Below are positions 4,069 through 50,918 of a stretch of 64,000 nucleotides of DNA, piece after piece. Within the stretch, counting starts at the first letter, position 1. Each line of letters starts with the position of its first letter. The notes under the pieces are model-generated. The model ran no database searches. It worked only from the letters and a program-made list of their open reading frames with translations, and was not told where the DNA came from. Both the position numbers and the translations under genes were made by a program. The DNA lies in IMG/VR virus record IMGVR_UViG_3300027759_006101, positions 186,001 to 250,000 of that record; one strand, given 5' to 3'.

Positions 4069-4683
4069 ATGCTAGACAATTATGAAAAAGATTCTAATGG
4101 TGTAATATTTCAAAAAGATAGAGAACCATTCTTATACGATTATTCTTACGCAGACAATTATAATACACTTCCTACAAATGATATTATGTCTCACTTGCGT
4201 TTAGGCTACATCATTGGTTCTTTGGGAAAAATGCCAGAATCAATTTTAGATGTTGGATATGGTAATGGTGCTTTTTTAAATTTAGCAAAAAATTACTCGA
4301 AATGTTATGGACACGATATTTCTCATTATCCAATTCCAGAAGGTGTTGAATTTGTAAAAGATATATCTGAAAAACATTTTGATGTAATAACTTTTTTTGA
4401 TGTATTAGAACATTTTCCCAATCCATACTTCCTCGAAAATTTAAATTGTAATTATATTGTTTGCTCTCTACCACATTGCTATAATTTTTCTGATGAATGG
4501 TTTGAGAATTGGAAACATCGAAAACCAAATGAACATCTTTGGCATTTTAATCAAGAATCTTTAATTAGGTTCTTTGATGCACAAGGATACTCAGAAGTCA
4601 ACACCTCTAATTTTGAAGATGTAGTGAGAAAGAGTAAAGAAGAATACTCTAACATTCTTTCTGGAGTGTTTAAGAAAAGATAA
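4069..4683 (+). CDS. class I SAM-dependent methyltransferase
   Basis: ILDVGYGNGAFL and FDVITFFDVLEH motifs; start moved to ATG 4069, 6 nt after TATAAT. Confidence 0.8.
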   Translation: MLDNYEKDSNGVIFQKDREPFLYDYSYADNYNTLPTNDIMSHLRLGYIIGSLGKMPESILDVGYGNGAFLNLAKNYSKCYGHDISHYPIPEGVEFVKDISEKHFDVITFFDVLEHFPNPYFLENLNCNYIVCSLPHCYNFSDEWFENWKHRKPNEHLWHFNQESLIRFFDAQGYSEVNTSNFEDVVRKSKEEYSNILSGVFKKR

Positions 4684-7354: not shown

Positions 7355-7391
7355 AAAAAAATCCCTCGAATCTTTAATCGGGGGATTTTTT
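7355..7391. terminator. bidirectional terminator with CTCGAA in the stem/loop
   Basis: AAAAAAATCCC...GGGATTTTTT between convergent genes. Confidence 0.75.
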
Positions 7392-9150
7392 ATTTAATTA
7401 TTTGTTTTATTTTATATGCTGCTTTTGTATATATGCCTGGGTTTACAGTTTCAGGAGTGGATGTGTAATTTGGCACGTATTGTTCTGAGAGTAATCTTAA
7501 AACAAAATCCTGAAATTGTTCTTCAAAATCAGCTGCCTTACGTCTTGCAAAAAAGGGAATTCTTTTAATTGGTATTGAGAAATAATTTGCAAAGTTGTTT
7601 TTAATTTGATCAGAAACAATTTTATTTGTAATATCCATCTCTGTGTTTGGTCTTGCGTAATAATGATCACTTCCATCAAATTCTAAAATATATTGAATTC
7701 TTTTACTACTGTCTAAAACAACAGCATCAAAAGAATATGATAGTGGATCAAAATTATTATTATTCAAAAAGATAGAATAAGAATCTGCAAAACCATCTTT
7801 ATTAGGTGTGTAAGTTGTACATTTCCATTTAGTGCAGGATCTCATTTCATCATTTGCAGTTTCTGCACACTCTAGCTCAAACTCATATAATTTTTTATCT
7901 TCGAAATCTGGATCTTCAGGTGTAAGATTTTTTCTATACGACCAGCCATCTTTTACTTCTGGGATTTTTTCAAATTCAGTGTTAGATAAATTGAAGCAAT
8001 GGATAGTTTTTCCATTTCTTTCGATTACTGTTTTATGTGATTTTATGCTACTAAAGAGATAAGTAAAAATGTCTTTGTTTCTATCTTTTTTGATTTGTGT
8101 TTCAACAAACTCTTCGAATCTGGGATCGAGTTTACATAGAAATCCTTGCTTAAAAAATAAATTTTGTGGAAGTATATTTTGAGTAAGATTGGTTTGTTGA
8201 ATGTTAAAAAAAACTTTATCACCAAGACTTGATGTTGGCTCTCTTTTATCAATGATCAATTCTTCGTAAACAGTTTTTAAATCACTATTAAATGGATCTC
8301 TTAATTGTCTGAGTGATAATATATGATAATTTTCATTGTTGAAATTATATATTGATATTTCTTTATTATTGATATCTATAATTTTATCATATTTTTGTTC
8401 TACAGATATTTTATATGTTCTTTCAGTAATGTCTTTTGGTAGTGTTCTTAGGAAACTTTCCCAAGCAATAGGATTTTCTCTGAATGATAAAACTTTTGGA
8501 TTCATTTCATTCCTAAAGATATTTAATTGTTGTTTGTCTAGAGCATTAAGATTGCTTTTAGATTTTAATTGATACCACACATCATTAAAATAATATTGTT
8601 TTGGCAAACCTTCATATACTGTTTCAGAAAATCTATTTGATATTATATTTTTATTTTTCATATCTCTTAAAATATTTAAGAATGTTTGAGCATCAGGAGT
8701 TATAAAGTCAATTCTGTATTTATTATTTATTTCATAATCAGGATAACGTATATTTTTATTGTTTTTTCTAATAAAAGGTATAGGTTGCACTCCGAGTTGT
8801 GCATATGCATTTTGTATTATATCTAAATTTGGAAGATCTTTTAATAAGGGTTTTCCAATTCTTAGTATTAAAGTATTATTTTGTCCAGGTTCTGTGTTTA
8901 TATCAGCAAAATAATGTGGTGAAGAAGAATAAAATTGTGTAAGTTGAGTTGCTTTTTCTTGAGATAATCTTTCAATAAAAATTTGTTTACTTGCAAATTT
9001 AGTTTTTGATAGTAAAGTTATGTGATCTTTTGTATCTTTTAATAAATTGTTAAATTCTTCTGGGGATAGATCATTGACTGAAATAGGAGCTGGCATATCG
9101 TATTGAACGATTTTGCTTTTTGGCATTCTTATCTTGATTCTATAATACAT
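7390..9150 (-). CDS. large hypothetical protein with C-terminal Vsr/DUF559-like PD-(D/E)XK nuclease domain
   Basis: C-terminal SFDAVVLD...ILEFDGSDHY...DQIKNNFA...IPIKRIPF pattern. Confidence 0.6.
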   Translation of the reverse strand: MYYRIKIRMPKSKIVQYDMPAPISVNDLSPEEFNNLLKDTKDHITLLSKTKFASKQIFIERLSQEKATQLTQFYSSSPHYFADINTEPGQNNTLILRIGKPLLKDLPNLDIIQNAYAQLGVQPIPFIRKNNKNIRYPDYEINNKYRIDFITPDAQTFLNILRDMKNKNIISNRFSETVYEGLPKQYYFNDVWYQLKSKSNLNALDKQQLNIFRNEMNPKVLSFRENPIAWESFLRTLPKDITERTYKISVEQKYDKIIDINNKEISIYNFNNENYHILSLRQLRDPFNSDLKTVYEELIIDKREPTSSLGDKVFFNIQQTNLTQNILPQNLFFKQGFLCKLDPRFEEFVETQIKKDRNKDIFTYLFSSIKSHKTVIERNGKTIHCFNLSNTEFEKIPEVKDGWSYRKNLTPEDPDFEDKKLYEFELECAETANDEMRSCTKWKCTTYTPNKDGFADSYSIFLNNNNFDPLSYSFDAVVLDSSKRIQYILEFDGSDHYYARPNTEMDITNKIVSDQIKNNFANYFSIPIKRIPFFARRKAADFEEQFQDFVLRLLSEQYVPNYTSTPETVNPGIYTKAAYKIKQIIK

Positions 9151-20346: not shown

Positions 20347-20378
20347 AAAAAAGGGGAGATTTATTCTCCCCTTTTTTT
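20347..20378. terminator. bidirectional terminator
   Basis: AAAAAAGGGGAGA-TTTAT-TCTCCCCTTTTTT. Confidence 0.9.
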
Positions 20379-20976
20379 ATTTTGTCTTCTTGCTTTCAAT
20401 CACAGTGTCGATGATTCCATATGCCTTTGCTTCATCTGCGCTCATATAGTAATCACGGTCACAATCATTTCGAAGCTTCTTTACTGTTTGTCCTGACTTT
20501 ACAGAAAGAATTTCAAGCAACTGGTCATAAAGCTTATTAGTCTCTTTTACTTGAATGTTGATGTCAGCAGCTGTTCCACGATATCCAGATGATACTTGGT
20601 GAATCATAATACGAGAGTGTGGAAGTGCAGAACGAGTACCAGTTCCTCCACATAATAGGATTGCTCCCATACTAGCAGCAGTTCCAACACAGGTAGTATT
20701 AATTGGTGCAGAAATGGTGTGCATAACGTCATATAATGCTAAACCATCTACTACACTTCCTCCTGGGCTATTAATGTAAAATTCAATAGCCATATGAGGA
20801 TCTTCACGATCAAGAAACAACATCTGCATAATACAGAGGTTCATAGAATGTTCGTTGACTTCTTCGCCAAGGAAAATGATGCGATCCTTGAGCAAACGTG
20901 AATACAGATCATAAGCACGTTCGCCTGTAGCAGATTTTTCGAGAACTGTTGGAATAATCATATATTGATTATCCAC
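20377..20976 (-). CDS. clpP: ATP-dependent Clp protease proteolytic subunit
   Basis: DLYSRLLKDRIIFL, YINSPGGSV, AASMG (Ser), IMIHQ (His) and RDYYMSA.EA..YGIID. Confidence 0.96.
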   Translation of the reverse strand: MDNQYMIIPTVLEKSATGERAYDLYSRLLKDRIIFLGEEVNEHSMNLCIMQMLFLDREDPHMAIEFYINSPGGSVVDGLALYDVMHTISAPINTTCVGTAASMGAILLCGGTGTRSALPHSRIMIHQVSSGYRGTAADINIQVKETNKLYDQLLEILSVKSGQTVKKLRNDCDRDYYMSADEAKAYGIIDTVIESKKTK

Positions 20977-28975: not shown

Positions 28976-30589
28976 ATGCCAGCAAAACAATTATCTTTCA
29001 ATGATGATGCACGACAAGCTATGGGTCGTGGAGTTGATATCGTAAGTAACGCAGTAAAAACCACATTAGGCCCTAAAGGTCGCAATGTAGTCATCCAATC
29101 ACCTTCAGGGCCAATTGTTACTAAAGATGGCGTAACAGTAGCTAAACACGTAGAACTTGAAGACCCTTATGAAGATTTGGGTGCACAATTATGTAAGCAA
29201 GTTTCCAGCAAGACTAATGATGTAGCTGGTGACGGAACTACTACCGCTACGGTTCTTGCGCAAGCTTTAGTTAATGGTGGCCTTAAATATATTTCTTCTG
29301 GTGGCAATCCAATCAGCGTTAAGGTTGGTATGGAATATGCTGCAAATAAAGCAGTTGAAATTATTGAAAGTCTTGCAAAACCTATCGAAAGCAAAGAACA
29401 AATTACATTTGTTGCAACTATCTCAGGCAATGAAGCTGAAGTTGGACAAATTGTTGCTGATGCTATGGAAGCTGTTGGCAAAGATGGTGTCATTACCATT
29501 GAAGAATCTAGAGGTCGAGAAACATGCTTATCACTTGTTGAAGGTATGAAATTTGACAAGGGTTATGTTTCTGCATTCTTTGTAAATAATGCAGAAAAGA
29601 TGCAGTGTCGTCATTCAGAACCATTTATTCTTCTTTATGATGGCAAAATTTCAGACCCAGCAGAAATTCTACCAATTCTCACTAAGGTAAACGAGCAAAA
29701 GAAACCCATCGTAATCGTTGCTGACAATGTTGACGGTCCAGCTCTTCAAATGCTCGTTATCAATGTCCATAAGGGTGCTATGCCTTGGGTTGCTGTAAAG
29801 ACTCCTGGATTTGCTGGACAAAAGAAAGAATATCTTTATGACATTGCTGCTTTAACTGGCGCCGATGTTATTTCCTCAGAGATGGGAACTACTCTTGAAA
29901 ATTGTACTATTGAAAATTTAGGTAAAGCAAAAAGTGTTATCATCAACAAAGAAACTACTACTATTATTGGTGGAGAAGGTGATGACGTTAAGATTGAAGA
30001 TCGTATTTCTCAATTAAAAGTTACTCTTTCACAAGTAGAGAGTGATTATGAAGCTAGAATGCTCAATGAAAGAATTGCAAAGCTTTCGGGTGGTGTTGCA
30101 ATCATTAAGGTCGGCGCCAGTACTGAAGCAGAATTAGTTGAGAAGAAGTATCGATATGAAGATGCTTTGGCTGCTACTCGTGCTGCTGTTGAAGAAGGTA
30201 TCGTTCCTGGTGGTGGTACAACTCTCTTACGTATTTCTCAACAATTAGAAACTATGAATGTTCTCACTGAAGAAGATGAGAAAGTTGGTTTTGAAATTGT
30301 TAGAAAAGCACTTATGGAACCTATCAGACAAATTGCTTTCAACGCTGGTATTAGTCCTGATGTTGTTGTTGATACAGTGTGTTCAAGAGACAACGGAATT
30401 GGACTTAATGCAAGGTCAGGTAAGTATGTTGATATGATACAAGAAGGCATTATCGATCCTGCTAAAGTCACTCGTTCAGCTGTCCAAAATGCAGTATCAA
30501 TTGCTGTTTTAGTATTGACTACAGAAGCCTTAATTGTAGACAAGCCAGTAACAAATGAAAAGGTCTTAATTCAAGAAGGAAGTTTCTAA
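28976..30589 (+). CDS. groL: chaperonin GroEL
   Basis: TLGPKGRNV, TKDGVTVA, AGDGTTTATVLA, GMKFDKGY, GIVPGGG and GIIDPAKV. Confidence 0.97.
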   Translation: MPAKQLSFNDDARQAMGRGVDIVSNAVKTTLGPKGRNVVIQSPSGPIVTKDGVTVAKHVELEDPYEDLGAQLCKQVSSKTNDVAGDGTTTATVLAQALVNGGLKYISSGGNPISVKVGMEYAANKAVEIIESLAKPIESKEQITFVATISGNEAEVGQIVADAMEAVGKDGVITIEESRGRETCLSLVEGMKFDKGYVSAFFVNNAEKMQCRHSEPFILLYDGKISDPAEILPILTKVNEQKKPIVIVADNVDGPALQMLVINVHKGAMPWVAVKTPGFAGQKKEYLYDIAALTGADVISSEMGTTLENCTIENLGKAKSVIINKETTTIIGGEGDDVKIEDRISQLKVTLSQVESDYEARMLNERIAKLSGGVAIIKVGASTEAELVEKKYRYEDALAATRAAVEEGIVPGGGTTLLRISQQLETMNVLTEEDEKVGFEIVRKALMEPIRQIAFNAGISPDVVVDTVCSRDNGIGLNARSGKYVDMIQEGIIDPAKVTRSAVQNAVSIAVLVLTTEALIVDKPVTNEKVLIQEGSF

Positions 30590-38862: not shown

Positions 38863-39165
38863 TTAAAAATCTTGATCAATAAAATCTAGTAATTGATCTT
38901 TTGTCAACTTGCCAGGTTTTCTTGCGATCATTTCTCCATTGTTGAAGAGAATTGTTACTGGAATACTCTTGACATCAAAATCTTCAGCAATTTCAGGAGC
39001 AACTTGACAATCTACAGAAAAACATTTTACTTTGTCATTCTCTTCTGAAAACTCTTTATAGATTGGAGCATAAGCTTTGCAAGGTCCGCACCAAGATGCT
39101 TCGAACTTTACTAAGCATTTTCCATCACTGATACTGTCGTAAAAATTTGTTGAATCTAACTTCAT
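38863..39165 (-). CDS. trxA: thioredoxin
   Basis: ASWCGPCK active site; VKSIPVT. Confidence 0.92.
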   Translation of the reverse strand: MKLDSTNFYDSISDGKCLVKFEASWCGPCKAYAPIYKEFSEENDKVKCFSVDCQVAPEIAEDFDVKSIPVTILFNNGEMIARKPGKLTKDQLLDFIDQDF

Positions 39166-39210: not shown

Positions 39211-39723
39211 ATGAACAGAATTTTACTGCTTAATTTAAACTACGAGCCATTATACGTTTGTTCCTTATCTAGAGCGATGAAATTGTTGATAATGGGCAAA
39301 GCTGAGACACTTCATTTCAAAGATGACACGTATTTTTTTACAGGAGCTGGACAACAATATCAAGTTCCTTCTGTTATTAGACTAAAATATAACATCAAGA
39401 AAAAAGGCAACCCAGTTTACAAAGTTAGTAGAATGGGAATTTTCAGTAGAGATAATTTCACTTGCCAATACTGCGGAATAAGAAAACAGAACTTAACTCT
39501 TGATCACGTACATCCTAGACACTTAGGAGGACAACACGTATGGGAGAATCTAGTTACTTGTTGTTCGGATTGTAATCATAAAAAAGGCGGAAAGAAGTTA
39601 GATCTTACTGGAATGAAATTGCTCTCCAAACCCAAAGTGCCCAGATATACCTTTAATTACTTGCTTAACAGGCCAATTGATAGAGAAGATGAGTATTGGT
39701 CTTATTACTTGACTGCATACTAA
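39211..39723 (+). CDS. HNH endonuclease (McrA-like)
   Basis: LLLNLNYEPL, VPSVIRL, RDNFTCQYCG, LTLDHVHP...GG...WENLVTCC..CN.KKG. Confidence 0.9.
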   Translation: MNRILLLNLNYEPLYVCSLSRAMKLLIMGKAETLHFKDDTYFFTGAGQQYQVPSVIRLKYNIKKKGNPVYKVSRMGIFSRDNFTCQYCGIRKQNLTLDHVHPRHLGGQHVWENLVTCCSDCNHKKGGKKLDLTGMKLLSKPKVPRYTFNYLLNRPIDREDEYWSYYLTAY

Positions 39724-39749
39724 AAACGGAGGGTTTATCCCTCCGTTTT
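39722..39749. terminator. bidirectional terminator
   Basis: AAAACGGAGGG-TTTAT-CCCTCCGTTTT. Confidence 0.9.
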
Positions 39750-40895
39750 GTATTTTCCACCACTTCTTTTTCTTTTGCAATATTGTTTCTGAGAAAAGCC
39801 TTTTGGATTACTGCAATTAATGCTTCCTTTGTACTTTGTTGACCATCTCTTTTTCATTTTGCCAGTACGAGGAGCATTGTAATCTTTTTTTGCTTCTTTG
39901 AATTGATCAGATGTTTCTACTGGCTCTTTCATAAACTCTTCAAGAAATTTTTGAAAATTATCATAAATAATTTTGTATACATTTCTTCTCATTTGTTCAT
40001 TTTCAGTATGTTGCAAAATTTGTGATATTAAGTATTCACCTTGCCAACTTATATCCTTGAGTACATTAGATGCATTTAAACTCATCGGATCTTGAATAAC
40101 AAATTTTAAAGCTTTTATTATGGATTGCTTATCTAAGAAAGAATATTTTTCAGCAAACTTACTAAATACGGCTGGACTGAAAAAGTCATTTATGTCAGAA
40201 AGAAGTGTGCTGTATTCTTGAGGATGATTGACATTGTAATAAGATATAACGCTCTTTTCATCTTCACCAGTGGCCAATCTTTGGAACACTTCGTAAACTT
40301 GGTCTGGTCGCTTAATTAATGTATCAACAAATTTTGCTACTTGTTGTGCCTTTCTATCTGGAGGCAATCTCATAAATAAATCTTTTTCTTTAGTTGATAA
40401 AAAATCATATACCATCATAAGCATTAATTTATCTGGGCTATCTTTTAGTTTTTTAGTGTCAGGATCTACCAATTGTTCTTTGTATTTACTAAAATAATCA
40501 GCAGCCATATCAAGTATTAGATTGCTTATATAAGGTTTTCTAAAAGTGCGGCCTTTGTCTACTGAGTGTCTTAATTCGTGTTTGATTGATTGAGCCATAT
40601 CATCAATAGTGTCACCACGTTGCAAATCTCTTAATCCAACTTCTTTTGTTTTTGGATCAAATGTTGCTAAAGCTTTATCAGTTCTAATTGGTACAAATGA
40701 AGAAATGTAGTTTTGTAATTTTGATTTTGCTAAATTTTCATTTAATGTATGAAAATATATAATTCCAAAATTAGGACTTACACCAGATTGTAACAACGCT
40801 TCAAGTTCAGCGTCAAAGTCATAATCTTTGCCTTCATTTTCAGATATATACTTTTGTAAATCTATAGTGCCATAAGCAGCAAATTTATACCACAT
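39735..40895 (-). CDS. MWY-tagged protein with HExxH metalloprotease-like motif and C-terminal cyanophage-type basic module
   Basis: MWYKFA; IKHELRHSVD; YY...PQEY; WSTKYKGSINCSNPKGFSQKQYC. Confidence 0.65.
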   Translation of the reverse strand: MWYKFAAYGTIDLQKYISENEGKDYDFDAELEALLQSGVSPNFGIIYFHTLNENLAKSKLQNYISSFVPIRTDKALATFDPKTKEVGLRDLQRGDTIDDMAQSIKHELRHSVDKGRTFRKPYISNLILDMAADYFSKYKEQLVDPDTKKLKDSPDKLMLMMVYDFLSTKEKDLFMRLPPDRKAQQVAKFVDTLIKRPDQVYEVFQRLATGEDEKSVISYYNVNHPQEYSTLLSDINDFFSPAVFSKFAEKYSFLDKQSIIKALKFVIQDPMSLNASNVLKDISWQGEYLISQILQHTENEQMRRNVYKIIYDNFQKFLEEFMKEPVETSDQFKEAKKDYNAPRTGKMKKRWSTKYKGSINCSNPKGFSQKQYCKRKRSGGKYKTEG

Positions 40896-41664
40896 CTGTA
40901 TCTGTCTCCAATGAACTAGTACTATAAGTTTGAGGTATTTTCACAGAATCCTTATATTTCTGCGTTTTATTATATGGAAGTCTCTTTAATCTGTGCTTGA
41001 CCATAAAACTATCGGGAGGAATATCGCCACTACCCATCGCATCAAATCTTGCTGGTACAAGTTCATTTGGCATCTTTTTTGATAATTCTTCTCTTTCACT
41101 TCTCGGAGTTTTTTCGTCAATTTTATAGCCGAAAGATTCAGAAGGATCATAAGATTCAACAGGTAAACCAAAGACTGAATTTCTTACTTCGAAAGCATCT
41201 TTGGAATGAACATCTCCAGAAATATACTGTATTTGAGGTTTATGATTTTGAAGAAACTTTTTCATTTCTTGATATAATTTTCTTCCCAAACCCCATTTTG
41301 CTCTTGTAATAGAAGATTCATCAACATCATATCCAGCATTTCTAAGTTCATCAGTCAAATCCATTTTATTTCTATCTGCTGGATTGATTGGTTTTTCCCA
41401 TTCTTCTCTTCCTGGTCTTAATGGATACTCATTCAAAGATACTAACTGAACAAAAGCAGTGTCTGAATAATCTTTGGCTTTAAAATCTATATAACCTAAA
41501 ACTCTACCGTAAAGATTTGCTTTTATAGAGTAAAGGTATTCATTATAGACTTCGATATCAAATTGAATATTTTTTAAGTCAAACGGCTTAGGTTTAATAT
41601 CAGGAAAATCCATATTTATTTGACCAGAAGGATCAACTCTTGTAACTGCTTCCCTGTACCACAT
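40885..41664 (-). CDS. MWY-tagged protein, GNAT-fold-like
   Basis: MWYREA; LGYIDF...RAKWGLGRKLYQEM...ISGDVHSKDA. Confidence 0.55.
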   Translation of the reverse strand: MWYREAVTRVDPSGQINMDFPDIKPKPFDLKNIQFDIEVYNEYLYSIKANLYGRVLGYIDFKAKDYSDTAFVQLVSLNEYPLRPGREEWEKPINPADRNKMDLTDELRNAGYDVDESSITRAKWGLGRKLYQEMKKFLQNHKPQIQYISGDVHSKDAFEVRNSVFGLPVESYDPSESFGYKIDEKTPRSEREELSKKMPNELVPARFDAMGSGDIPPDSFMVKHRLKRLPYNKTQKYKDSVKIPQTYSTSSLETDTDVV

Positions 41665-41888
41665 TAGCGCTTATCCTCGTATCTTGGAAATAAATGACCA
41701 ACTGCTGCTTCATATAATACTCTGGAAACATCATCGTCATTAAGCGCCATTTTTCTCACTCTATCTGCCATATAAAAAATATCTACACTATTAGCATAAG
41801 GGAATATATCTTGTAAATGATCTTTCAATGGTTTAGATTCTCCATTGAAAAAATAATACTTAACTTTTCCAGATTCTCTGTACCACAT
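41664..41888 (-). CDS. MWY-tagged small protein
   Basis: MWYRES; coupled. Confidence 0.7.
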   Translation of the reverse strand: MWYRESGKVKYYFFNGESKPLKDHLQDIFPYANSVDIFYMADRVRKMALNDDDVSRVLYEAAVGHLFPRYEDKR

Positions 41889-42529
41889 TATTTATTTTTT
41901 GCCTCTAGATAAAGCTTGATAAATGTGATTTCAATTTTATTTCTTATATCTTCATCATTAGAATATGTTTCTGACAAAAGCATTTCTTCAAGTTTATCTC
42001 TGTCAATTTTTTGACCAGATATAGAACTTAATTCATAAGTAAGATTTGGTATTTTATAAACAATGAAATTTTTAAAATGATCATCTACTGGCTGAGACAT
42101 TTCATTTTCATAAGTTTCAAACCAGTCGCTGTCTATTTGATTAGCAACTTTTCTAAATAAAGGAATAAGTTCTCTTTCTTTAGCATCCAAGTTAATTCCA
42201 TTGTCTACCAATCTTCCTTGCACTTCATCAATTTCGATTGGATGCATATAAGTACTACCTCTTTCCAAAAGGTCAGACAAGAAATCAGCTGGTTTGGTTG
42301 ATTGATTTAAAATTCCCAAAACTGTTTGTTTCAATGGAGGTGAAACACTATCTAAAATTTCAGGATAGTCTCTTGCCATAGCTACTAATGTTGGAAAAAA
42401 CTCAACCTCACTTATCTCTCCGGATTCAATTCTCTGATGTAAATTTGCAAGAAGCGGATGCATTTTTACTTTTGGTTCTTCTATTTCAAAAGGAGGCTTA
42501 GAAGTGTCAATGGCTTTTCTGTACCACAT
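41888..42529 (-). CDS. MWY-tagged hypothetical protein
   Basis: MWYRKAID; coupled. Confidence 0.7.
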   Translation of the reverse strand: MWYRKAIDTSKPPFEIEEPKVKMHPLLANLHQRIESGEISEVEFFPTLVAMARDYPEILDSVSPPLKQTVLGILNQSTKPADFLSDLLERGSTYMHPIEIDEVQGRLVDNGINLDAKERELIPLFRKVANQIDSDWFETYENEMSQPVDDHFKNFIVYKIPNLTYELSSISGQKIDRDKLEEMLLSETYSNDEDIRNKIEITFIKLYLEAKNK

Positions 42530-43228
42530 TTAATAATCTCTCCATTGTCTCATAGTAGATGGTTTCTTTTTTCCGTGCATTTCAAATTGCTTGATATCAT
42601 TTTTAAAATCAGCAGCAGCATCAATGTCGTAAACTTCGTCAAATACACCTTTGCCAGTTCTTACTTTAAATCTTATATTTTGAGGTTGCAACAAATGGAC
42701 AATTTCAAATAATTTTTGCATTTGTGTAAATGTTGGAACGTGTACAGCATTTACAGTCATCACCGAACCCATATTGCTTATTCTGATACCTTTGTCAAAA
42801 TAATCGTGAAGAATTTCAGTTACAGCGTCCTCTTGTTCCATAAAAGGTTGTTCAGGTCCAGAATCAAAATTTATTCTTTCTGCATAATCCATTGGGCCAT
42901 AAGCTTTATCTGGCAAGTTTCTGATATTATACTTTTCTGATATTTCTGGATTGTCACGAAGACTTTTACGAGTTTGTTCTAATACTTTATCGATATAATT
43001 GCTATGACTTGAACCTTGATGAATACCTCCAGAACCAGTAAGAATTAAGTGATGATCTCCTTTGGAATGGTCTATTTGATCAACTGGCTGAGGAATATTT
43101 GCTCTGACTAAATCTTTAAAAACATCATCTGGAACACCCGGTTTTTCAACTGGTGTAGGAGCATTTGGTTGTTCTGGTTCCTTTAGCCCAAACAATTCTG
43201 CAAGATCAATAGCAGTTCTATACCACAT
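42530..43228 (-). CDS. MWY-tagged hypothetical protein (H..Y...GIRI...PT..Q pattern)
   Basis: MWYRTAID; coupled. Confidence 0.7.
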   Translation of the reverse strand: MWYRTAIDLAELFGLKEPEQPNAPTPVEKPGVPDDVFKDLVRANIPQPVDQIDHSKGDHHLILTGSGGIHQGSSHSNYIDKVLEQTRKSLRDNPEISEKYNIRNLPDKAYGPMDYAERINFDSGPEQPFMEQEDAVTEILHDYFDKGIRISNMGSVMTVNAVHVPTFTQMQKLFEIVHLLQPQNIRFKVRTGKGVFDEVYDIDAAADFKNDIKQFEMHGKKKPSTMRQWRDY

Positions 43229-43989
43229 TATCTGACCTTAGAAACAAGAATTTTAACAAGAACATTTTCCAGCGCTGTATTTACGTTTCTTTGATTAACA
43301 TTGGCCTCTTCTAATGCTGTAAGAACTTCTTGTTCCGTCACTTGAATATCTTTATTGTAAGGTGAGCGTGAAGCTGCTTCTTCAATCATATCTACCATTT
43401 CAGGCACTCTTGATTTTAAATAATCATCAAAGTAATCATAGAAATCTTGGAATGGAGTTATTGCTCTAATTGCATCATTTATGGTTAAGTTATTGATTGG
43501 ATTTGCTTGAGCAAGATCTAGCAACATATCTCCTGCTTGTCCTGGGTAATTTACATCAACACCATTTTCTCTAAAAAAATCTTCTGCATCATCTTCAAGA
43601 TCTGAAATCCACATAACAGAAGTATCATCTGCGAATTCAGTTGCTTGTTCTAAAAAAGCTCTATCTTGTCCGAAAGTTTGAACACCAGATTCTTGCAATC
43701 GAGTTTGGAAATTATCAATATCTGCAGCATTAGCGACAGGAGTTGCTTCTACCATCTCAATAAAAAGATTGTTGAATTCATCCTCTGATATTTCGCCTCT
43801 TTCAAGTTTTGCCCTTAGATCAGCAAATTTATCTTTTCTTTCGTTTGGGACACTCATACCTAAAGGATCTTGTGAAAAATCAAAATCATCTGTTTGAGCT
43901 TGAACAAATTTAAAAATAGAATCTGAAGTACTATATTTGCCTTGTTTATCTAATTTGTTTGCAAGCTTAAGTAAATTGAAAATATTCAT
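43228..43989 (-). CDS. acidic hypothetical protein with shared helical leader
   Basis: MNIFNLLKLANKLDKQGKYSTSDSIFKFVQAQ. Confidence 0.7.
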   Translation of the reverse strand: MNIFNLLKLANKLDKQGKYSTSDSIFKFVQAQTDDFDFSQDPLGMSVPNERKDKFADLRAKLERGEISEDEFNNLFIEMVEATPVANAADIDNFQTRLQESGVQTFGQDRAFLEQATEFADDTSVMWISDLEDDAEDFFRENGVDVNYPGQAGDMLLDLAQANPINNLTINDAIRAITPFQDFYDYFDDYLKSRVPEMVDMIEEAASRSPYNKDIQVTEQEVLTALEEANVNQRNVNTALENVLVKILVSKVR

Positions 43990-44558
43990 TATTTGCCTTT
44001 CAAGTTATCAGATACAGACCTGCCAGCTTCCCAATTTCTGCACGACCAGTAACGAGCTTTAGTTTTTGGCCCTGGATTATCGCAATTATGTCTAGCTCTA
44101 AAATTCTTTCTTCTATTTGGGTTGTTTCTTTTTATGCTGAGGCCTGGATCGCCGAAGTTAACTTTGATGATATTTCCCTTGTCATTCTTTACATAAACAG
44201 AAAATTTCTTTGGACCACCTGGAGTACGAAAAGGCTTATTAAGTTTCTTGCCTTTGTTCTTATCCGATGCTGTTTTATGTTCACTTTTTAAGTAATCAGA
44301 CACTCCATCAAGCATTTCTACAGCATTAGTAATCTTTGACTGAACCCAAGCCATAAGATTGCCTTCGCCTTCTTCACCTACGACATCTTCAATGTTTTCG
44401 ATTGCTCTTTCTGCTGTTTCCATTTGATTTCTGACCATATCGTATTCGTGATCATAATCATTGGAAGCAGTCTTTATCAAAGATGTAATTTTATCTGCTA
44501 ATCTATGTGCTTGATTGTTGTCAAGTTCGTTAGCTAAATCGGCTAATATTTCTAACAT
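43989..44558 (-). CDS. shared helical leader plus two cyanophage-type head modules
   Basis: Start at ATG 44558 (AGGA RBS); DHEYDM...AWVQSKIT and KLNKPFRTPGGPKKFSVYV...RARHNCD...ARYWSC. Confidence 0.75.
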   Translation of the reverse strand: MLEILADLANELDNNQAHRLADKITSLIKTASNDYDHEYDMVRNQMETAERAIENIEDVVGEEGEGNLMAWVQSKITNAVEMLDGVSDYLKSEHKTASDKNKGKKLNKPFRTPGGPKKFSVYVKNDKGNIIKVNFGDPGLSIKRNNPNRRKNFRARHNCDNPGPKTKARYWSCRNWEAGRSVSDNLKGK

Positions 44559-44559
44559 A

Positions 44560-44958
44560 TTATATTCCTGCCTTGAAAGTAAAATCATAAGTAAAAGGCG
44601 TAAGTCCAACAGAAACAATTGGATTGTTTAATAGTCCAAATGTCACAACGCCTGTAACTGCTGTCCCTGCAGTTGATCCAATAGAGTTTAAGATTATAAG
44701 TCTTGCTGTATCTGCAAATGTTGACATTGTAGTATAAGCTAAACCACTAAAATTAGTTTCTACATAATCAACTGCATCTGAATAACTTGTAGTAGAACCA
44801 ATGCCCTCATAAAATGTAGTTAAATCAAAAATATTAAGGTATTTTTTAGTAAGGGGTGCGACTGAATTGGTCAATGTATAAAAAACTTCAACAATACTTC
44901 CAGATTTTGTGATTGAATTGATTGTGTAGTTTACAGAAACAGTTATTCCGATTGCCAT
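44560..44958 (-). CDS. putative structural protein
   Basis: T/S/G-rich 132-aa ORF, GGAG RBS. Confidence 0.6.
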   Translation of the reverse strand: MAIGITVSVNYTINSITKSGSIVEVFYTLTNSVAPLTKKYLNIFDLTTFYEGIGSTTSYSDAVDYVETNFSGLAYTTMSTFADTARLIILNSIGSTAGTAVTGVVTFGLLNNPIVSVGLTPFTYDFTFKAGI

Positions 44959-45008
44959 AATAAACTCCTATACAAGTTATTTGTTCTTAAATCGAGAATA
45001 AAAATCCT

Positions 45009-45425
45009 ATGAAACGCTTTCTTAAATTTTGTTCAGATTTGGATGAATTAGGTTATATTGAGGAGTCTGATAAACTTTTTAACAAATATGCCTACACTCA
45101 TAATGAATTGTTGAAAAAGCAAATATTAATTCCATCTAATGTAAAATCAACTGCTACTAAAGCATATGGTTACAGAAATAAAGACATAAAATTTGGAACT
45201 ATAGAAGACATTGAAGTTGCAAGGCAGCTTACACAAAGAAGTTATCTTGAGCTTGATACTGTTTTGAAAATTCATAAAATTACAGCAAAAAAATGGCATT
45301 CTCGTAGTAAAAAAGATGACAATCCTACTTATTGGGAATATCTTTGTTATGGCGGGGATGATGGGAAAAGCTGGGCTGAAAATATAATAAAAATCTACTT
45401 ACAAAAGGAATGGAAAATTAATTAG
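45009..45425 (+). CDS. helical-leader protein with ARQL...YGGD.G..WA module
   Basis: MKRFLKFCSDLDELGYIEESDKLFNKYA. Confidence 0.7.
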   Translation: MKRFLKFCSDLDELGYIEESDKLFNKYAYTHNELLKKQILIPSNVKSTATKAYGYRNKDIKFGTIEDIEVARQLTQRSYLELDTVLKIHKITAKKWHSRSKKDDNPTYWEYLCYGGDDGKSWAENIIKIYLQKEWKIN

Positions 45426-45444
45426 TTTGTAGTATAATAATCTT

Positions 45445-46200
45445 GTAAGCAATTTGACAAAAGAATATGGAAATCGGTGGCTTGACGTCGTAAGATAATA
45501 ATAAAGGGATAAAGTAATTCTCTACTGCTCCCGCCAAATAAAATTGGTCAGTCAAGCAAGCTCAATCTTTGTGAGTTTCAAGCACAGAACTTGGAAATAT
45601 GGAATAAGATGAAAGCGGACTTATATACGCTGAATATAAGCCAAGCACAGCATCATCGAAGCCTAAAAGATGAAGAGTAATTATAAGGTTCGAGAAGTCA
45701 CGATTAAGAGCTTTATAGTATGATGAGAGGTTTTGCGGAAGATACAATTTAATTCCTTCCGTTATAGTCTCAAAATCAGGTCTAAATACTTTGTGGAGTA
45801 TTAGGCATTGAAGTGAGTTGTATTCCTTATCCAGGAGCAACAAGATACGCACACTTCTGTAGAGAGCGGGTATAGAATTATTAAAGAGATCGCAATCCGT
45901 TGATAAGATAACAATAATTCACTCAAGAAATAGACGTATCTCGTGTTAGTTGTAAACAATCAAAAAATAAAAAGTGTAATGCAACAAACACTTAAAACAT
46001 AGTGCAGATGCTTAAACATCTAAAATTTCACTTATGTTTAAAAGACTAACATTAGACTAGAAATGCCACTAGTTTAAAAAGGCGATTGTGTAGTTTGACT
46101 GTAAAGTGGATAAGCAAGCAATCTATAAGTTGCGAGTAGAGTAATCTTGCAAACGAAACTACAGGGCTAGAAATAATCTCATTCTAGCCCTTTACTTTTT
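45445..46200 (+). ncRNA. putative large structured ncRNA (~750 nt; GOLLD/ROOL-class candidate)
   Basis: TATAAT at 45433-45438; no credible ORF; at least 9 helices (e.g. GCTTGAC 45480/GTCAAGC 45551 and TGTAGTTT 46089/AAACTACA 46156); 3' terminator. Confidence 0.65.
46163..46200 (+). terminator. intrinsic terminator closing the ncRNA
   Basis: AGGGCTAGAA...TTCTAGCCCT followed by TTACTTTTT. Confidence 0.85.
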
Positions 46201-46245
46201 TAAGTGTCTATGATAAAAACATAGAATATTAATTTGAGGAATATT

Positions 46246-46701
46246 ATGAAAACACAATTTTTATTATTAACATTATCTTTATCTTCTTTGTGTTTTGGCC
46301 AACAATTTGGAAATAATTTTTCACAAAATCCATATTCAGAATCATATTTTGTAAAGCCTAATCAAACTTTATTAAATGCAAATGTAAAACTTAAAAAACT
46401 TCCAGGTTTTGAAGTAAACATTGATAGCTTGCATAAAGGCACAGATTTATCTGCATCAGAAAAACACAAATTGCTGATGGGTTACAATTATAAGTCACCT
46501 ATAGGTACGTTCAATTTTTCTGCCGGGAACACAAAAATGCCAGGATTTGTTGAAGATAAGAAATCACTTTCTGCATCTTATGTACTCAAAAATAAATGGA
46601 GTGATTTTAAATTTTCTTATGAAAATAATAATAATTTATTACCAAACTCTAATAAATTCAGTGACCCTAGATTAGTTGTTTCCGGTTCTTTCATTTTATA
46701 A
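46246..46701 (+). CDS. exported beta-rich protein (signal peptide)
   Basis: MKTQFLLLTLSLSSLCFG; GAGGA RBS; late-type promoter upstream. Confidence 0.65.
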   Translation: MKTQFLLLTLSLSSLCFGQQFGNNFSQNPYSESYFVKPNQTLLNANVKLKKLPGFEVNIDSLHKGTDLSASEKHKLLMGYNYKSPIGTFNFSAGNTKMPGFVEDKKSLSASYVLKNKWSDFKFSYENNNNLLPNSNKFSDPRLVVSGSFIL

Positions 46702-46718
46702 GGTACAATGAACGTATT

Positions 46719-47612
46719 ATGGAAAAAACACCAGAATACGCATTAGAAGCTGGAATTGCTGTTTGGACTGCTGATAATCAAGATATTGTCAAGTGCGCTC
46801 TTGAATTAGCTACAGTATCAACTAACTTAGGATTAGTTGATACAAATCAAAACTCTTTTATGGGAATTGTTCCTACTGAAGTTTTTGGTCCAGATGGCAA
46901 TTTGATTCACGAATGTTTTTTAAACATCAATCATATGGCTTGGGGATATTTTAAGATTATCATCAAGTCAATTTCTCATTTTGAAGTAATTGCTCCAAGA
47001 CTTACTACTTTCAAGAATCAAATCTTGCTTTCACAACAAGAAGCTTTAGATTTCATTAAAGATCTTGCTACGTCTCTTGATGATTTATATCTGCTTGAGT
47101 CATTCCTTGAAAAAGAAGAAATTCGTGATGCTGAAAAATTACTTGAAAATATGCTTATTGGATATCACGAAGCAGTAAAGCACGAACTTATTTCAATCAA
47201 AGAATATATTTCTAGTTTTCCAGGCAAGATGTATATTCAAAGCACAAATAGTGATGACAAGCAATATATTGATGATATTCCTAATCGTTATGATTTAGCC
47301 TTACAACACCCTGAAAACTGGCATATCGAGTTCTTTGATGGCATCGGTACTACAGAGCAAGAAGATAAGGAATTTCGTAAGAGACTTTCAGAATTTCAGA
47401 AGCTTGAAAATCATTATGCTTGTAGGTTATATCTAGCACAGAAAATTGTGTTAGAATCTAAGCGTAGGTTGACTGTTTTGACAGATAGTGAAGTTCCTGA
47501 GCCTGATACTAGCGGTGAAGTCTTGTATGATAAAGGATTGGGACTTGCTCTTGTTCGACCTGTAATTCACTGTATTGGAATGAGAATAGATTATGAATTC
47601 TTATGTTCGTAA
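46719..47612 (+). CDS. hypothetical protein
   Basis: 297-aa ORF. Confidence 0.7.
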   Translation: MEKTPEYALEAGIAVWTADNQDIVKCALELATVSTNLGLVDTNQNSFMGIVPTEVFGPDGNLIHECFLNINHMAWGYFKIIIKSISHFEVIAPRLTTFKNQILLSQQEALDFIKDLATSLDDLYLLESFLEKEEIRDAEKLLENMLIGYHEAVKHELISIKEYISSFPGKMYIQSTNSDDKQYIDDIPNRYDLALQHPENWHIEFFDGIGTTEQEDKEFRKRLSEFQKLENHYACRLYLAQKIVLESKRRLTVLTDSEVPEPDTSGEVLYDKGLGLALVRPVIHCIGMRIDYEFLCS

Positions 47613-48300
47613 AGATTATGCCAGAAAAACCAGCAACAAATACTCTCAGGCTCAACTTGATGTAGCAGGTAAATATTGCACAAAAATTATTTGCCTGTAT
47701 TTATTTAAAGAAATTGCGCCTGAATACACACTTGACTTGACTGAAAAATATATTTTTGGTGACATTATAACTCGTACAAATGATAAGTTTGTCCGAGCAA
47801 GTGAGAGTGAATGCAAGGGTACTAAGTTGTTTGATATGGTTTGGAATCTCAAATGGGAGCCAAACCTATTGAAAAAGAAAGGCTTAGAACAATTTAGCTC
47901 TATTTTTAAGACTGATGTTACAGGAAGTGTGGAAGTTTTAGATTATTCAAAAATAACTCAAACTTCAATATACACTGGACATAGACTTTCAAAACCAGAA
48001 GATATATTTGAATTTTATCATTTCCTCTTTCCTTTAGAAGAAGCAATGGAATGTATGAATAATAAAACTTTTCCCTCAAGGTTTATTTATTGGAAGTTGA
48101 ATCCTGAAATTTACGGACTTCAATATAAAGAAGAAATTTCATCTGATGCTGATGGAAATAAATTTAAGGAACTCAAATCCAAAGTTCCATTGAAGTATAT
48201 TGAAAGAATTACATTTAATTCTGACACAGGTAAATTTACAAGATTAGAAAAATATAAGACATACACTAAGAATGATGGAAACTTAACATATGAATATTAA
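47593..48300 (+). CDS. hypothetical protein (possible PD-(D/E)XK: GD...ESECK)
   Basis: 235-aa coupled ORF; motif weak. Confidence 0.55.
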   Translation: MNSYVRKDYARKTSNKYSQAQLDVAGKYCTKIICLYLFKEIAPEYTLDLTEKYIFGDIITRTNDKFVRASESECKGTKLFDMVWNLKWEPNLLKKKGLEQFSSIFKTDVTGSVEVLDYSKITQTSIYTGHRLSKPEDIFEFYHFLFPLEEAMECMNNKTFPSRFIYWKLNPEIYGLQYKEEISSDADGNKFKELKSKVPLKYIERITFNSDTGKFTRLEKYKTYTKNDGNLTYEY

Positions 48301-48661
48301 AATTACAGACAAAGCAGCCGAATTAGTGAAAGATTCTATATCTCAAATTGAAACAGATGATCCACATCTCTACTTTTATGTAGCTGGAGGAGGTTGCTCT
48401 GGGCTTCAATACGGATTGGCTGTCTCTGAAGGTGAGCCGGAAATTGACGACATTATTGTTTATGACAATGATATCAAAATTGTAGTTGATGCAAAATCAG
48501 CAAAATATCTTGATGGTGCAATTATATGCTACAAAGAAGATGGATTGATGTCAGGATTCAAGATTGAAAATCCTAATGCTGAAAAGAGTTGTGGTTGTGG
48601 CAGTTCTTTTTCAGTTGACGGAGAAACTTATGACTCTTGTGGTGGCTGTGGATATAAGTAA
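48290..48661 (+). CDS. HesB/IscA/ErpA iron-sulfur cluster assembly accessory protein
   Basis: ITDKAA, GGGCSGLQY and NPNA..SCGCGSSF. Confidence 0.92.
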   Translation: MNIKITDKAAELVKDSISQIETDDPHLYFYVAGGGCSGLQYGLAVSEGEPEIDDIIVYDNDIKIVVDAKSAKYLDGAIICYKEDGLMSGFKIENPNAEKSCGCGSSFSVDGETYDSCGGCGYK

Positions 48662-48873
48662 TCTTTCTTTATCCCAATAATCATATTGATAGCCTTTCCA
48701 AATTTAGTTTTACGCTGTTTTTTGGAAAGGTTTTCTTCTATTTTTTCAAGCTGTTCAACGCTCATCAACAAACAGATATCTAAACTCTTCACCATATCTT
48801 TTCTAGATAATTCTAATTCAGTGAGTTTTCTAGCCACCATTGCTTTGTAGCCGTCTGAGTCTGAATAATCCAT
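48628..48873 (-). CDS. hypothetical protein
   Basis: Coupled ORF. Confidence 0.5.
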   Translation of the reverse strand: MDYSDSDGYKAMVARKLTELELSRKDMVKSLDICLLMSVEQLEKIEENLSKKQRKTKFGKAINMIIGIKKDYLYPQPPQES

Positions 48874-49247
48874 TACATCATTTTCAAACGATATTTTGTC
48901 TGATTTAAGATAGCAAGCATTTCATCTTTGATATTTAATAAATCAGTATCAGAATTTGAGTCTAATGATTGAGGAAGATAATTTATAAAATATTCAACTG
49001 CTTCATCGATAAATACATTGTAATCATCAGATAAATTTTCAAGATTTACAACAAAACCATTCTTGCCCATCAAAGCGCCATTCTTACCTTGAAAAACTTC
49101 TATGAAATCATCAATAAGTGGGTCAAGTGCTTCATAAGCTTTTCCGAATGCCTCGTGTTGAGCAAAAGAACCTGGCTTCTTTTGTGTTTGCCAATGATAA
49201 ACTCTAAACTGATTCTGTATTGTTAAAAGATTTGTAATTATATTCAT
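48873..49247 (-). CDS. ferritin/Dps-like four-helix protein (DUF5856-type)
   Basis: YHWQT...FAQHEAFGKAYE.L..LID.FIEVFQG...IKDEML. Confidence 0.75.
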   Translation of the reverse strand: MNIITNLLTIQNQFRVYHWQTQKKPGSFAQHEAFGKAYEALDPLIDDFIEVFQGKNGALMGKNGFVVNLENLSDDYNVFIDEAVEYFINYLPQSLDSNSDTDLLNIKDEMLAILNQTKYRLKMM

Positions 49248-49909
49248 TTGTAACTCTCCAAGGTTTCATTGACAAAATCCCAATTAATTAAGTTAACCCA
49301 TTTTTTTAAATATTTTTCTCTATCATTTTGATATTTTAAATAGTAAGCGTGTTCCCATAAATCACATCCGATTAATGGTTTGCCGCATTCTTCTATATAT
49401 GGATTGTTTTGATTTGCCATTGAAGACAGTTTTAGATTTCTACCATCTTCAGTGCATAACCAAACCCAACCAGAACCAAAATGATCCATTCCTGTTTTGA
49501 TAAATTCTATTTTAAACTTATCAAGTGACCCAAACTTCTTGTCAATAAGATTTTTTATAGCGCCAGAGTAGACAGGCTTTTCAGTAGTCATTACATTCCA
49601 GAAGAAAGAATGATTGAAATATCCACCAGCATTATTCTTAAACTTTTCTCTATCTTTTGCTGGAATCTTATTTAAATCTGACATTAATTCGACTAATGAA
49701 TTCTTTTGTAATTTTGAGTTTTCATCAACAATGCTCATCATATTATCAAAATATTTTTTCTGATGCTTTGTGTGATGAATTTTCATTGTTTCTGCGTCAA
49801 TTACAGGTTCTAGAAAAGAATATTCGTATGGTAATTTTTGGAATTCAAAACCGTTTGATTCTACTTTTTCTTTTTTTGATGAAAGTATTACAGTATTAGT
49901 TATAAACAT
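49244..49909 (-). CDS. sod: Fe/Mn superoxide dismutase
   Basis: LPY...LEP...MKIHHTKH, NHSFFW, FGSGWVWL and DLWEHAYY. Confidence 0.93.
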   Translation of the reverse strand: MFITNTVILSSKKEKVESNGFEFQKLPYEYSFLEPVIDAETMKIHHTKHQKKYFDNMMSIVDENSKLQKNSLVELMSDLNKIPAKDREKFKNNAGGYFNHSFFWNVMTTEKPVYSGAIKNLIDKKFGSLDKFKIEFIKTGMDHFGSGWVWLCTEDGRNLKLSSMANQNNPYIEECGKPLIGCDLWEHAYYLKYQNDREKYLKKWVNLINWDFVNETLESYK

Positions 49910-50355
49910 TATCCACCCTGGACAAACACATTGTAATTACCTCTTTCATTTGGTTGATTACTCCATTGTAATTGTAAAACACCCTGATAAGAAGTTAAGT
50001 TATTAAATGCGCTTGTATTTGCTGCGCCTTGTTTGCACGATAGAATAAAGTTGCCCGGATTTACACCATTTCTAGCAGCCCACTCATTAAAGTTTTCTTC
50101 TGTGCCCATATCATTATTCTGCCCACTTAGAAAAAACTTTCCATTTTGGTCAACATTTCCGTGAACTATACTGACCATTTTCCCAGTAGTAACATCACGA
50201 ACAGTTACAGGCGCACCAGTTGTTTTGAACTGCTGAAGCTTTGGTAAATCTGCTTGAGAAATTTCTATACCCTGTCCACCACCTGAAATGGTTGATGGAT
50301 TAGAAGTAGTTGTCAAATTTTGTAAAGGCTGAGCTTGAGAATATCTGTACCACAT
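49909..50355 (-). CDS. MWY-tagged protein with HG...LSC dyad-like motif
   Basis: MWYRYSQA; IVHGN...FILSCKQG; late-type promoter upstream. Confidence 0.6.
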   Translation of the reverse strand: MWYRYSQAQPLQNLTTTSNPSTISGGGQGIEISQADLPKLQQFKTTGAPVTVRDVTTGKMVSIVHGNVDQNGKFFLSGQNNDMGTEENFNEWAARNGVNPGNFILSCKQGAANTSAFNNLTSYQGVLQLQWSNQPNERGNYNVFVQGG

Positions 50356-50378
50356 AATATTTTTATTCTATGAAAAGA

Positions 50379-50918
50379 CTAACTAACCTTCCATTCAATA
50401 AAACTTTCATAAGAGATACATTCAGTACAAAGATCCTCTAATTCAGTTAATGCTTCAAATATATTTTCAACAAGAGCTGTATCATTTTGTGACAAATCTA
50501 TAAACTGCACTAACTTTTTATGAAACTTTTCTGGATGCATTTTTCCAAACATTGGGAGTTTCATTTCGTTTAAAATATCTCTAGCAATATTTTTTGGAAT
50601 TATAATTTGATTAAAATTTGTATTGAGATCTTTTGCTTGGATTGTGATCCTTACTGCATCAGGCAATATAAAATCCCAAGCATATTCTTTACAAAAAGGA
50701 AAATCCATATCCAGAACAAACCCAAGATTAGTGAACTCTTTTTGCCAATATGCCAAAGGATAATTTATAGAGTTTTTATTTTTGACAAGAGCCAACATTT
50801 CTTCTGGAAGTGTTGGCTCAATATCTGGATGAATATGAAAAGTAGCAGACCAAAGGACAGTATCTTTTACCTCGTCATCTCCTAAATCCACAGGCTGAAA
50901 AACTACGTGTTTTGACAT
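50379..50918 (-). CDS. hypothetical protein
   Basis: 179-aa coupled ORF. Confidence 0.65.
   Translation of the reverse strand: MSKHVVFQPVDLGDDEVKDTVLWSATFHIHPDIEPTLPEEMLALVKNKNSINYPLAYWQKEFTNLGFVLDMDFPFCKEYAWDFILPDAVRITIQAKDLNTNFNQIIIPKNIARDILNEMKLPMFGKMHPEKFHKKLVQFIDLSQNDTALVENIFEALTELEDLCTECISYESFIEWKVS

Follow-up and report, generated by a model that had tools for sequence, protein, structure and literature searches.

Why would unrelated proteins of one phage, five of them encoded side by side, begin with the same six residues? The question is raised by a 64,000-nucleotide stretch of viral DNA (hereafter the window), bases 186,001-250,000 of the 358,269-bp IMG/VR record IMGVR_UViG_3300027759_006101 (G000). 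Six minus-strand open reading frames (ORFs) in it start with the tag MWY[KR]x[AS]. Sequence comparison indicates that the tag is an exposed, modular N-terminal peptide through which unrelated proteins share one fate. From the cargo types and the gene context we infer that this fate is packaging. By analogy with the signals of phages T4 and P1, the tag would be an N-terminal procapsid-targeting signal for stand-alone injected effectors, a reading to which a probability of about one half is given.

The six ORFs listed in the original prediction were confirmed. They begin at 40895, 41664, 41888, 42529, 43228 and 50355, read MWYKFA, MWYREA, MWYRES, MWYRKA, MWYRTA and MWYRYS in the same order, and all open with ATGTGGTAY. 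The word ATGTGGTA was observed seven times in the window against 1.5 expected, and seven was reached in none of 100 shuffles. The seventh site (4469-4476) was discarded as spurious; it reads MW-stop and has no ORF. The genes of the array do abut or overlap, through TAATG (1 nt), through TAA followed directly by ATG and through one 11-nt overlap. The tagged proteins are also unrelated, as had been claimed, with no similarity by blastp (E<=0.1) among the six or to the rest of the proteome.

The tag extends well beyond these six genes. In the whole of G000, 16 of the 17 ATGTGGTAY sites lie 0-15 codons past an in-frame stop and are ORF starts. MWY is the commonest N-terminal tripeptide, found in 15 of ~393 ORFs where composition predicts ~0.2, and it occurs at no internal position among the 110,101 residues of the proteome. 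The tag therefore marks ~15 proteins genome-wide, not six; the proteome scan gave 15 tagged genes and one 29-codon ORF. The consensus from 81 distinct 9-mers, collected from the relatives described below as well, is M-W-Y-[R 43, K 21, S 13]-x-[A 46, V 10, I 7, S 7]-[I/A/V/Q/K]; when position 4 is Ser, K or R usually comes next. The 29-codon ORF, outside the window at G000 119056 on the minus strand, begins MWYSRIKLAISKDEA, ends TGATGA and overlaps the start of a ~165-amino acid (aa) ORF (MTQQEAY..). It could be a tagged gene that has suffered a frameshift, or else a real mini-ORF. The 586-aa protein of window 7390-9150 (minus strand), with the start MYYRIKIR, may have Tyr for Trp in the tag; a search for relatives to compare it with found none.

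G000 is an uncultured jumbo phage with 34% G+C and an estimated completeness of 89%. It encodes a large terminase subunit, a Mu-type portal, a head maturation protease domain, rIIA, rIIB, GroEL, a clamp loader and DNA polymerase. It also encodes ClpP (E 3.9e-68) and a 451-aa AAA_2/ClpX-like zinc-ribbon AAA+ ATPase. A tblastn search with the portal found distant phages only, the closest cultured portal being that of Bacillus phage G at 28% identity. No cultured-phage relative was found by blastn, and none among the GTDB species genomes searched with the portal. Relatives were collected with the array proteins and the portal, giving 46 viral contigs with a portal identity of 61-100%. MWY is enriched over a control pattern in every relative tested. 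The 316-kb relative G004 (portal identity 68%) has 10 long ORFs beginning MWY[KR]x[AS], and its remaining 8 ATGTGGTAY sites are short chance ORFs without the tag extension. Pooled over genomes, the extended motif is present in 74 of 81 long ORFs vs 1 of 21 short ORFs. Phage G, Tunturi_5 and the uncultured phage LR745208 have no MWY enrichment, and all ten tag-DNA sites of LR745208 are internal or spurious; the tag thus appears specific to the G000 clade. Full-text literature searches found no description of an MWY-type tag (MWYR, MWYK, MWYS) or of a consensus capsid-targeting or packaging signal.

The tag is selected as a peptide, to judge by its invariance in fast-diverging orthologues across the clade (portal identity at least 61%). 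In the alignment of the family encoded next to the portal (184 columns; lengths 93-181 residues), MWY makes up 3 of only 8 invariant columns and position 4 is always K or R. Among homologues of the 259-aa array protein that reach the N-terminus, 58 of 60 have MWY[RK]x[AV], a count that includes three over-extended gene calls with the tag a few residues inside the start. About 105 of 120 homologues of the 386-aa array protein start MWY[KR]xAA[YF]GT. The G002 orthologue of the 232-aa protein (78% identity) retains the tag, that of the 148-aa protein starts MWYKIAQQ, and orthologues of the 74-aa protein start MWYSLAAR in G002 and MWYRESGK in L116, a 380-kb NCBI relative. Orthologues also retain the tag as the length of the linker shifts (MWYKSAQMTFMQSPETNEEW vs MWYRISADNIDIKKTWTKTSNNQESNEEW). 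A tag-less orthologue does exist: the protein at G000 287946 is without the tag and its G002 and G004 versions have it.

Structure prediction places the tag outside the folded body. In the AlphaFold2 models of the GNAT-fold (259-aa) and HExxH (386-aa) proteins it is predicted to be disordered. The former has a predicted local distance difference test score (pLDDT) of 73 with residues 1-26 below 50, and the latter a pLDDT of 81.6 with exactly residues 1-6 below 50. In the NUDIX proteins the tag is followed by a short linker, an internal Met and then the first beta-strand; it looks as if the tag had been placed ahead of an older start.

The original prediction had weighed whether the shared start could be only a DNA motif. 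The constraint is found to act at the protein level: synonymous codons vary, the upstream DNA is unshared and an MWNY variant occurs. Codon 3 is TAT in 33 tags and TAC in 22. Position 4 is encoded by AGA, AGG, CGA, AAA and AAG, and position 6 by four Ala codons and three Val codons. In orthologues of a 914-aa tagged protein, at ~36% identity, MWNYK or MWNF stands in place of MWY. The 20-110 nt upstream of the tagged genes have nothing common to all but A+T richness. A sigma-70 promoter scan of the array stayed at chance level, no hairpin was found inside the array, and no late-promoter motif common with the head genes was seen by eye. One word, G[AG]ATAA[AG] (typically GAATAAAAAT), is enriched about 10-fold at -16 to -8, where it precedes 8 of 39 MWY and long-leader genes vs 9 of 354 others (p 6e-5). 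Its role may be that of a promoter or translation signal common to these genes. In G000 its sites precede 137894, 236355 (window 50355), 289849, 231009 (window 45009), 195233 (window 9233), 224369 (window 38369) and others. Other intergenic regions of G000 are rich in TTGACA and TGnTATAAT.

The tag is not the only shared N-terminus in this genome. About 18 G000 proteins have a ~36-residue two-helix N-terminal leader (the long leader) on unrelated bodies. Its pattern is phi-phi-x-x-phi-A-x-x-L-D-x-x-G, with a second helix ending phi-x-[KR]-[LIF]-[AS]-[QIE]; an extended form reads ..phi-A-x-x-L-D-x-x-G-x-Y-x-x-[AS]-[DN]...[KR]-[LIF]-[AS]-[QIE]. The leader itself has no Pfam or PDB match (the PDB profile search gave chance-level results), and PHROG matches fall only in the bodies. 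Several of these proteins have very basic C-terminal domains that are DUF5754/DUF5872-like.

The suggested kinship of tag and leader was borne out in two ways: the same [KR]x[AS][QI] motif forms the last turn of the leader, and two cargo families carry either N-terminus. Leaders end DRLAQN, HKIAQI, FKIAQL, SRLAID and TKLAID, to be compared with the tags MWYRLAQN, MWYKIAQQ and MWYRTAID. In the first exchange a 258-aa G004 protein, MWYRLSKKIIKAEDEK-DPLGIS... (L115:1681-2457), aligns with a 277-aa long-leader protein of G001 (L011:1459-2292) at 43% identity (E 2e-57) from residue 37 of the latter on. The profile of this family found only 30 proteins in 1.84 billion representatives and, fragments aside, their N-termini are the long leader or MWYR and nothing else. 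The 213-aa array protein also aligns with L011:1459-2292 (BLASTP E 2e-8) starting just past the tag or leader, and the profile-search matches P0128, P0135, P0145 and P0153 bear MWYR. The body family of the 253-aa protein encoded directly upstream of the array likewise bears either the MWY tag or the long leader. Between the gene for this protein and the corresponding G001 gene, conservation at the DNA level is confined to the leader region. In the second exchange an HExxH homologue, P0256, whose body is 74% identical, has a 47-residue leader-like segment replacing MWY. MWY and long-leader genes adjoin each other twice in G000. The MWY tag may thus be a minimal form of the longer leader. It is tentatively proposed that the 6-residue tag and the 36-residue helical leader make up a two-format signal system built on one core motif, which would direct ~33 proteins of each genome, or 8% of its proteome, to the procapsid.

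The cargo is of a recognizable type. Three tagged proteins have Pfam matches above the cut-offs, to ART-PolyVal (361 aa, E 2.7e-10), PcfJ (594 aa, E 2.3e-13) and NUDIX (125 aa, E 1.5e-17). A tagged 113-aa protein matches the same ART region of a 1664-position PHROG profile, and the tagged NUDIX protein also matches a portal-fusion PHROG. An HExxH motif is present in the 914-aa tagged protein as well as in the 386-aa one. Phage_Mu_F, a family not detected in G000 by Pfam, is weakly suggested by the ESM Atlas for a tagged 160-aa protein with an LPPLHxNCxC motif. None of the tagged proteins with an assignable function belongs to replication, transcription or the tail, and each has at most one recognizable domain. 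Iyer et al. 2017 found such domain types fused in polyvalent proteins, for which they predicted capsid packaging and injection (PMC5512222).

One tagged gene sits in the head module. All 38 relatives with a locus spanning the region have the gene order ~530-aa protein, MWY protein of 93-181 aa, portal and protease fusion. The ~1380-aa protein past the portal (G000 43855-47994, L019; loci L041-L082) has a head maturation protease domain at residues ~52-243. Its conserved N-terminus, M[YK][KR][VIA]AKGGAIT, is loosely tag-like. The start MYRVAK was set aside as a loose tag variant, such loose matches being near background and some orthologues reading MKKVAK. The 562-aa ORF after the protease fusion has FAALKLAEIQ and [KR]TASL motifs within its first 45 residues and is a candidate capsid protein or scaffold. 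The portal (G000 48118-50499, L020; Mu-type) has a fused C-terminal REase_MTES_1575/DUF559 nuclease-like domain at residues 706-777; no tagged protein has such a fused domain.

Because of this cargo repertoire, the tagged gene next to the portal and the precedents, incorporation into the procapsid followed by delivery is the best-supported fate. The tag would serve to anchor stand-alone effector enzymes, together with small head proteins, to a part of the assembling procapsid: the portal, the protease fusion protein, or else the core or scaffold. Once inside the head, the tagged proteins would enter the next host along with the DNA, like the internal proteins and Alt of T4 and DarB of P1. Removal of the tag by a prohead protease is a possible later step.

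The nearest precedent is the capsid-targeting sequence of T4, described in a passage of PMC7411985 that cites Mullaney and Black 1996 as 10-20 residues long, modular and transferable. In both systems a short N-terminal peptide is borne by unrelated proteins; those of T4 (IPI-III and Alt) include an ADP-ribosyltransferase and are enclosed in the head and injected. The T4 sequence differs in that it is without an MWY-type consensus, binds the gp22 core and ends at a gp21 cleavage consensus. The MWY tag has only six residues, a strict consensus, ~15 carriers and a long-leader alternative. In phage P1 the first 30 residues of DarB suffice to load a reporter into the capsid, and the same study found no consensus among the Dar proteins (PMC9024508). 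The P1 signal is likewise N-terminal and sits on a large anti-restriction effector, but the six-residue MWY consensus is common to many proteins.

Three further systems share some of these features. The polyvalent proteins have the same repertoire (ART-PolyVal, PcfJ, NUDIX, GNAT, metallopeptidase-like and MuF-like domains) and are likewise predicted to bring several activities that modify the host in with the DNA. They fuse their domains, often with MuF or portal, whereas here the domains are unbundled into separate tagged genes. Many head and ejection proteins of phiKZ/SPN3US-type phages begin with extensions that are believed to direct them to the prohead (PMC7411985). These propeptides are 100-130 residues long and end at A-x-E, and the G000 clade, with its Mu-like portal, is unrelated to those phages. 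The cargo-loading peptide of encapsulins is a swappable terminal peptide of ~10 residues that is found on diverse cargo enzymes and binds the inner face of an HK97-fold shell. It differs in being usually C-terminal, in serving a compartment without portal, DNA or injection, and in having no sequence similarity to the MWY tag.

Several observations weigh against procapsid targeting. Six residues are fewer than in any capsid-targeting sequence shown experimentally to be sufficient, and nine residues of P1 DarB are insufficient (PMC9024508). The MuF-like and HExxH assignments are leads only, and 7 of the 15 carriers are without an assigned function. The head context is seen for one tagged gene only, the others being scattered. 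After the tag no conserved residue of a protease type (T4 L/I-x-E) is found. PF03420, the T4-type protease family, went undetected in G000, in a search that is uninformative since the control genomes were equally silent. Finally, ClpP and the ClpX-like ATPase keep a degradation signal a live alternative.

In that alternative the tag and leader signal another shared fate, either timed degradation or unfolding by ClpX-like/ClpP or GroEL, or docking to a non-virion hub or compartment. ClpX recognizes some short N-terminal motifs of hydrophobic and basic residues. The phage has all three proteins (ClpP, the zinc-ribbon AAA+ ClpX-like protein and GroEL), the tag is N-terminal, exposed and predicted to be disordered, as in degrons, and most tagged genes lie outside the head module. 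A 36-residue two-helix leader would however be an odd equivalent of a degron, and a tagged gene is fixed directly upstream of the portal in every relative covering the region. The carriers, moreover, have polyvalent or virion-delivered domain types, and the very basic C-terminal domains of several long-leader proteins suit internal head proteins. On balance such a fate is considered unlikely.

A less probable alternative is that [KR]x[AS][QI] is a mere processing site for the head maturation protease or for one of the tagged HExxH peptidases, with the targeting lying elsewhere; the leader would be a removable propeptide and MWY the shortest stub still presenting the site. A short consensus is often where giant-phage head proteins are cut (PMC7411985), and the 1379-aa protein adjoining the portal includes a head maturation protease domain. 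The motif's position, at the end of the leader, is that expected for the cut of a propeptide, and LKLAEIQ and [KR]TASL occur in the first 45 residues of the 562-aa ORF downstream of the protease. Cutting five or six residues off an enzyme would nevertheless have no evident purpose unless the stub does more, and the invariance of MWY, which precedes the putative site, speaks for recognition of the aromatic pair itself.

An action of the repeat at the nucleic-acid level, as a translation-initiation context (AUGUGGUA) or a short gene-shuffling recombination site with the peptide as a by-product, is very improbable on the evidence of codon usage and of motif copies within the leaders: codons 3, 4 and 6 vary synonymously with the amino-acid class retained, the MWNY variant loses the DNA word and keeps Trp and Tyr, the same peptide motif lies ~30 codons inside long-leader genes, where initiation is irrelevant, the tag is found on scattered single genes too, and there is no shared upstream or stem-loop element. 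What speaks for it is that Met and Trp have single codons, so that the first 8 nt are fixed at either level of selection, that recombination breakpoints fall within the repeat, and that TAC is somewhat over-used at codon 3 (47% in the tagged genes of G000 vs 29% genome-wide), a difference that is not significant (p 0.15).

The original prediction viewed the array as a cassette expandable at the shared start, and comparison of gene content upheld this: the content of the array differs in every relative examined, and two whole-gene insertions or deletions break in the tag repeat. In G001 a 494-aa MWYRLAYG gene takes the place of three G000 genes, the array of G002 unites orthologues of genes that are dispersed in G000, and L116 is without the 232-aa gene and the GNAT gene. 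Homology between G000 and G001 restarts exactly at the ATG of MWYREAVT, and a G000/G002 homology block has a tag at each boundary. Between G000 and L116 the homology blocks on either side share 25 nt at one junction and 10 nt at the other, in both cases exactly on ATGTGGTAY..., and such overlaps, as read from the alignments, are a signature of recombination between tag-coding direct repeats. The outcome is that one tag-plus-cargo unit is gained or lost and translational coupling is retained. Because every cassette starts with the same 9-13 nt, such units can be added or removed in frame; the coding sequence of the signal would thus double as the recombination joint by which effector cassettes come and go. 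T4-type phages have mobile promoter/stem-loop cassettes, which resemble the array in having a repeat at gene boundaries that coincides with breakpoints; here the 10-25 nt tag repeat marks two whole-gene insertions or deletions and block ends. The T4-type repeat is an intergenic promoter plus stem-loop, whereas the MWY repeat is coding and promoter-like sites in the array are at chance level. In G001 the two long-leader genes of the operon are separated by an inserted 267-aa ORF (L011 656-1459), perhaps a homing endonuclease, whose N-terminus was recognized by eye as GIY-YIG-like.

The array is the distal part of a tightly coupled eight-gene minus-strand operon that runs from 44958 to 39735 and consists of three upstream genes and five MWY genes (Table 1).

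Table 1. Features of the array operon, its surroundings and the long-leader genes; positions are those of the window unless G000 is named
Feature	Position	Strand	Basis or remark
132-aa gene, first of operon, neither tag nor leader	44560..44958	-	same gene order in L116
189-aa long-leader protein, basic DUF5754-like C-terminal domain	43989..44558	-	leader alignment
253-aa long-leader protein, directly upstream of MWY array, same operon	43228..43989	-	
232-aa gene, MWYRTAID start, tag codons 43211-43228	42530..43228	-	ORF translation
213-aa gene, MWYRKAID start, remote paralogue of long-leader-protein body	41888..42529	-	BLASTP
74-aa gene, MWYRESGK start	41664..41888	-	ORF translation
259-aa gene, MWYREAVT start, GNAT fold	40885..41664	-	AlphaFold2 and Foldseek
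386-aa gene, MWYKFAAY start, HExxH at residues 106-110, basic Cys-containing C-terminal tail	39735..40895	-	
Terminator-like GC-rich hairpin, 11-bp stem, flanking A and T runs	39723..39749	.	closes array operon and convergent HNH gene
138-aa long-leader protein, divergent from array operon	45009..45425	+	GAATAAAAAT at about -13
148-aa gene, MWYRYSQA start	49909..50355	-	heads run with Fe/Mn superoxide dismutase (49244-49909), then DUF5856 protein
Long-leader genes in the window	6768, 9233, 19838, 38369(-), 43989(-), 44558(-), 45009		
Further long-leader genes in G000	G000 56809, 68630, 120255, 141335, 145518-151294, 198746		

Scans of the array proteins against Pfam, PHROG and NCBIfam gave no match, and the 232-aa protein had no ESM Atlas lead. 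In the 189-aa protein the Pfam match to DUF5754 is below threshold (E 0.006) and phrog_7595 matches with E 4e-13. The top 50 Foldseek matches of the 259-aa model in the PDB are all GNATs (e.g. NatD, GCN5, Naa60 and RimI), and on the strength of this model the protein is probably a protein acetyltransferase. The HExxH of the 386-aa family is invariant in alignment A4, and the model of the 386-aa protein had no significant Foldseek match. The GNAT gene ends inside the tag of the following gene (40885-40895): its three final codons and stop (..DVV*), GAT GTG GTA TAA, are read in another frame from within ATG TGG TAT AAA. The DVV end is kept in homologues, and the overlap of the GNAT and MWYK genes is therefore conserved. 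Two GNAT homologues, P0115 and P0117, start MWYKSVLAS followed by FDKLAVV, which looks like a second tag of the portal-adjacent type ahead of a degenerate first one. Auxiliary genes of the window encode ClpP (20377-20976), GroEL (28976-30589), an IscA-like protein of Fe-S cluster biosynthesis (48290-48661) and a DUF5856 protein (48873-49247). The ORF at 38863-39165 is thioredoxin-like, with a Pfam match on the L116 orthologue only.

The tag is unusual in its strict six-residue consensus, its two interchangeable formats, its presence on 4-8% of the proteome and a coding sequence that is also the recombination joint. Even if the destination is not the capsid, a six-residue sorting or fate signal on such a share of a viral proteome would be out of the ordinary. 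Injected phage proteins are usually learned only from virion proteomics of cultured phages, and the capsid-targeting sequences of T4 and P1 have no searchable consensus. If procapsid targeting is correct, the MWY tag would be the first consensus capsid-targeting signal recognizable from sequence alone, and a minimal means of bringing foreign proteins into large capsids. It would show that an effector repertoire turns over by recombination in the tag itself. The injected arsenal of a whole clade of uncultured jumbo phages would become predictable from sequence, and many of its proteins without known function would be flagged as candidate host-takeover or anti-defence effectors.

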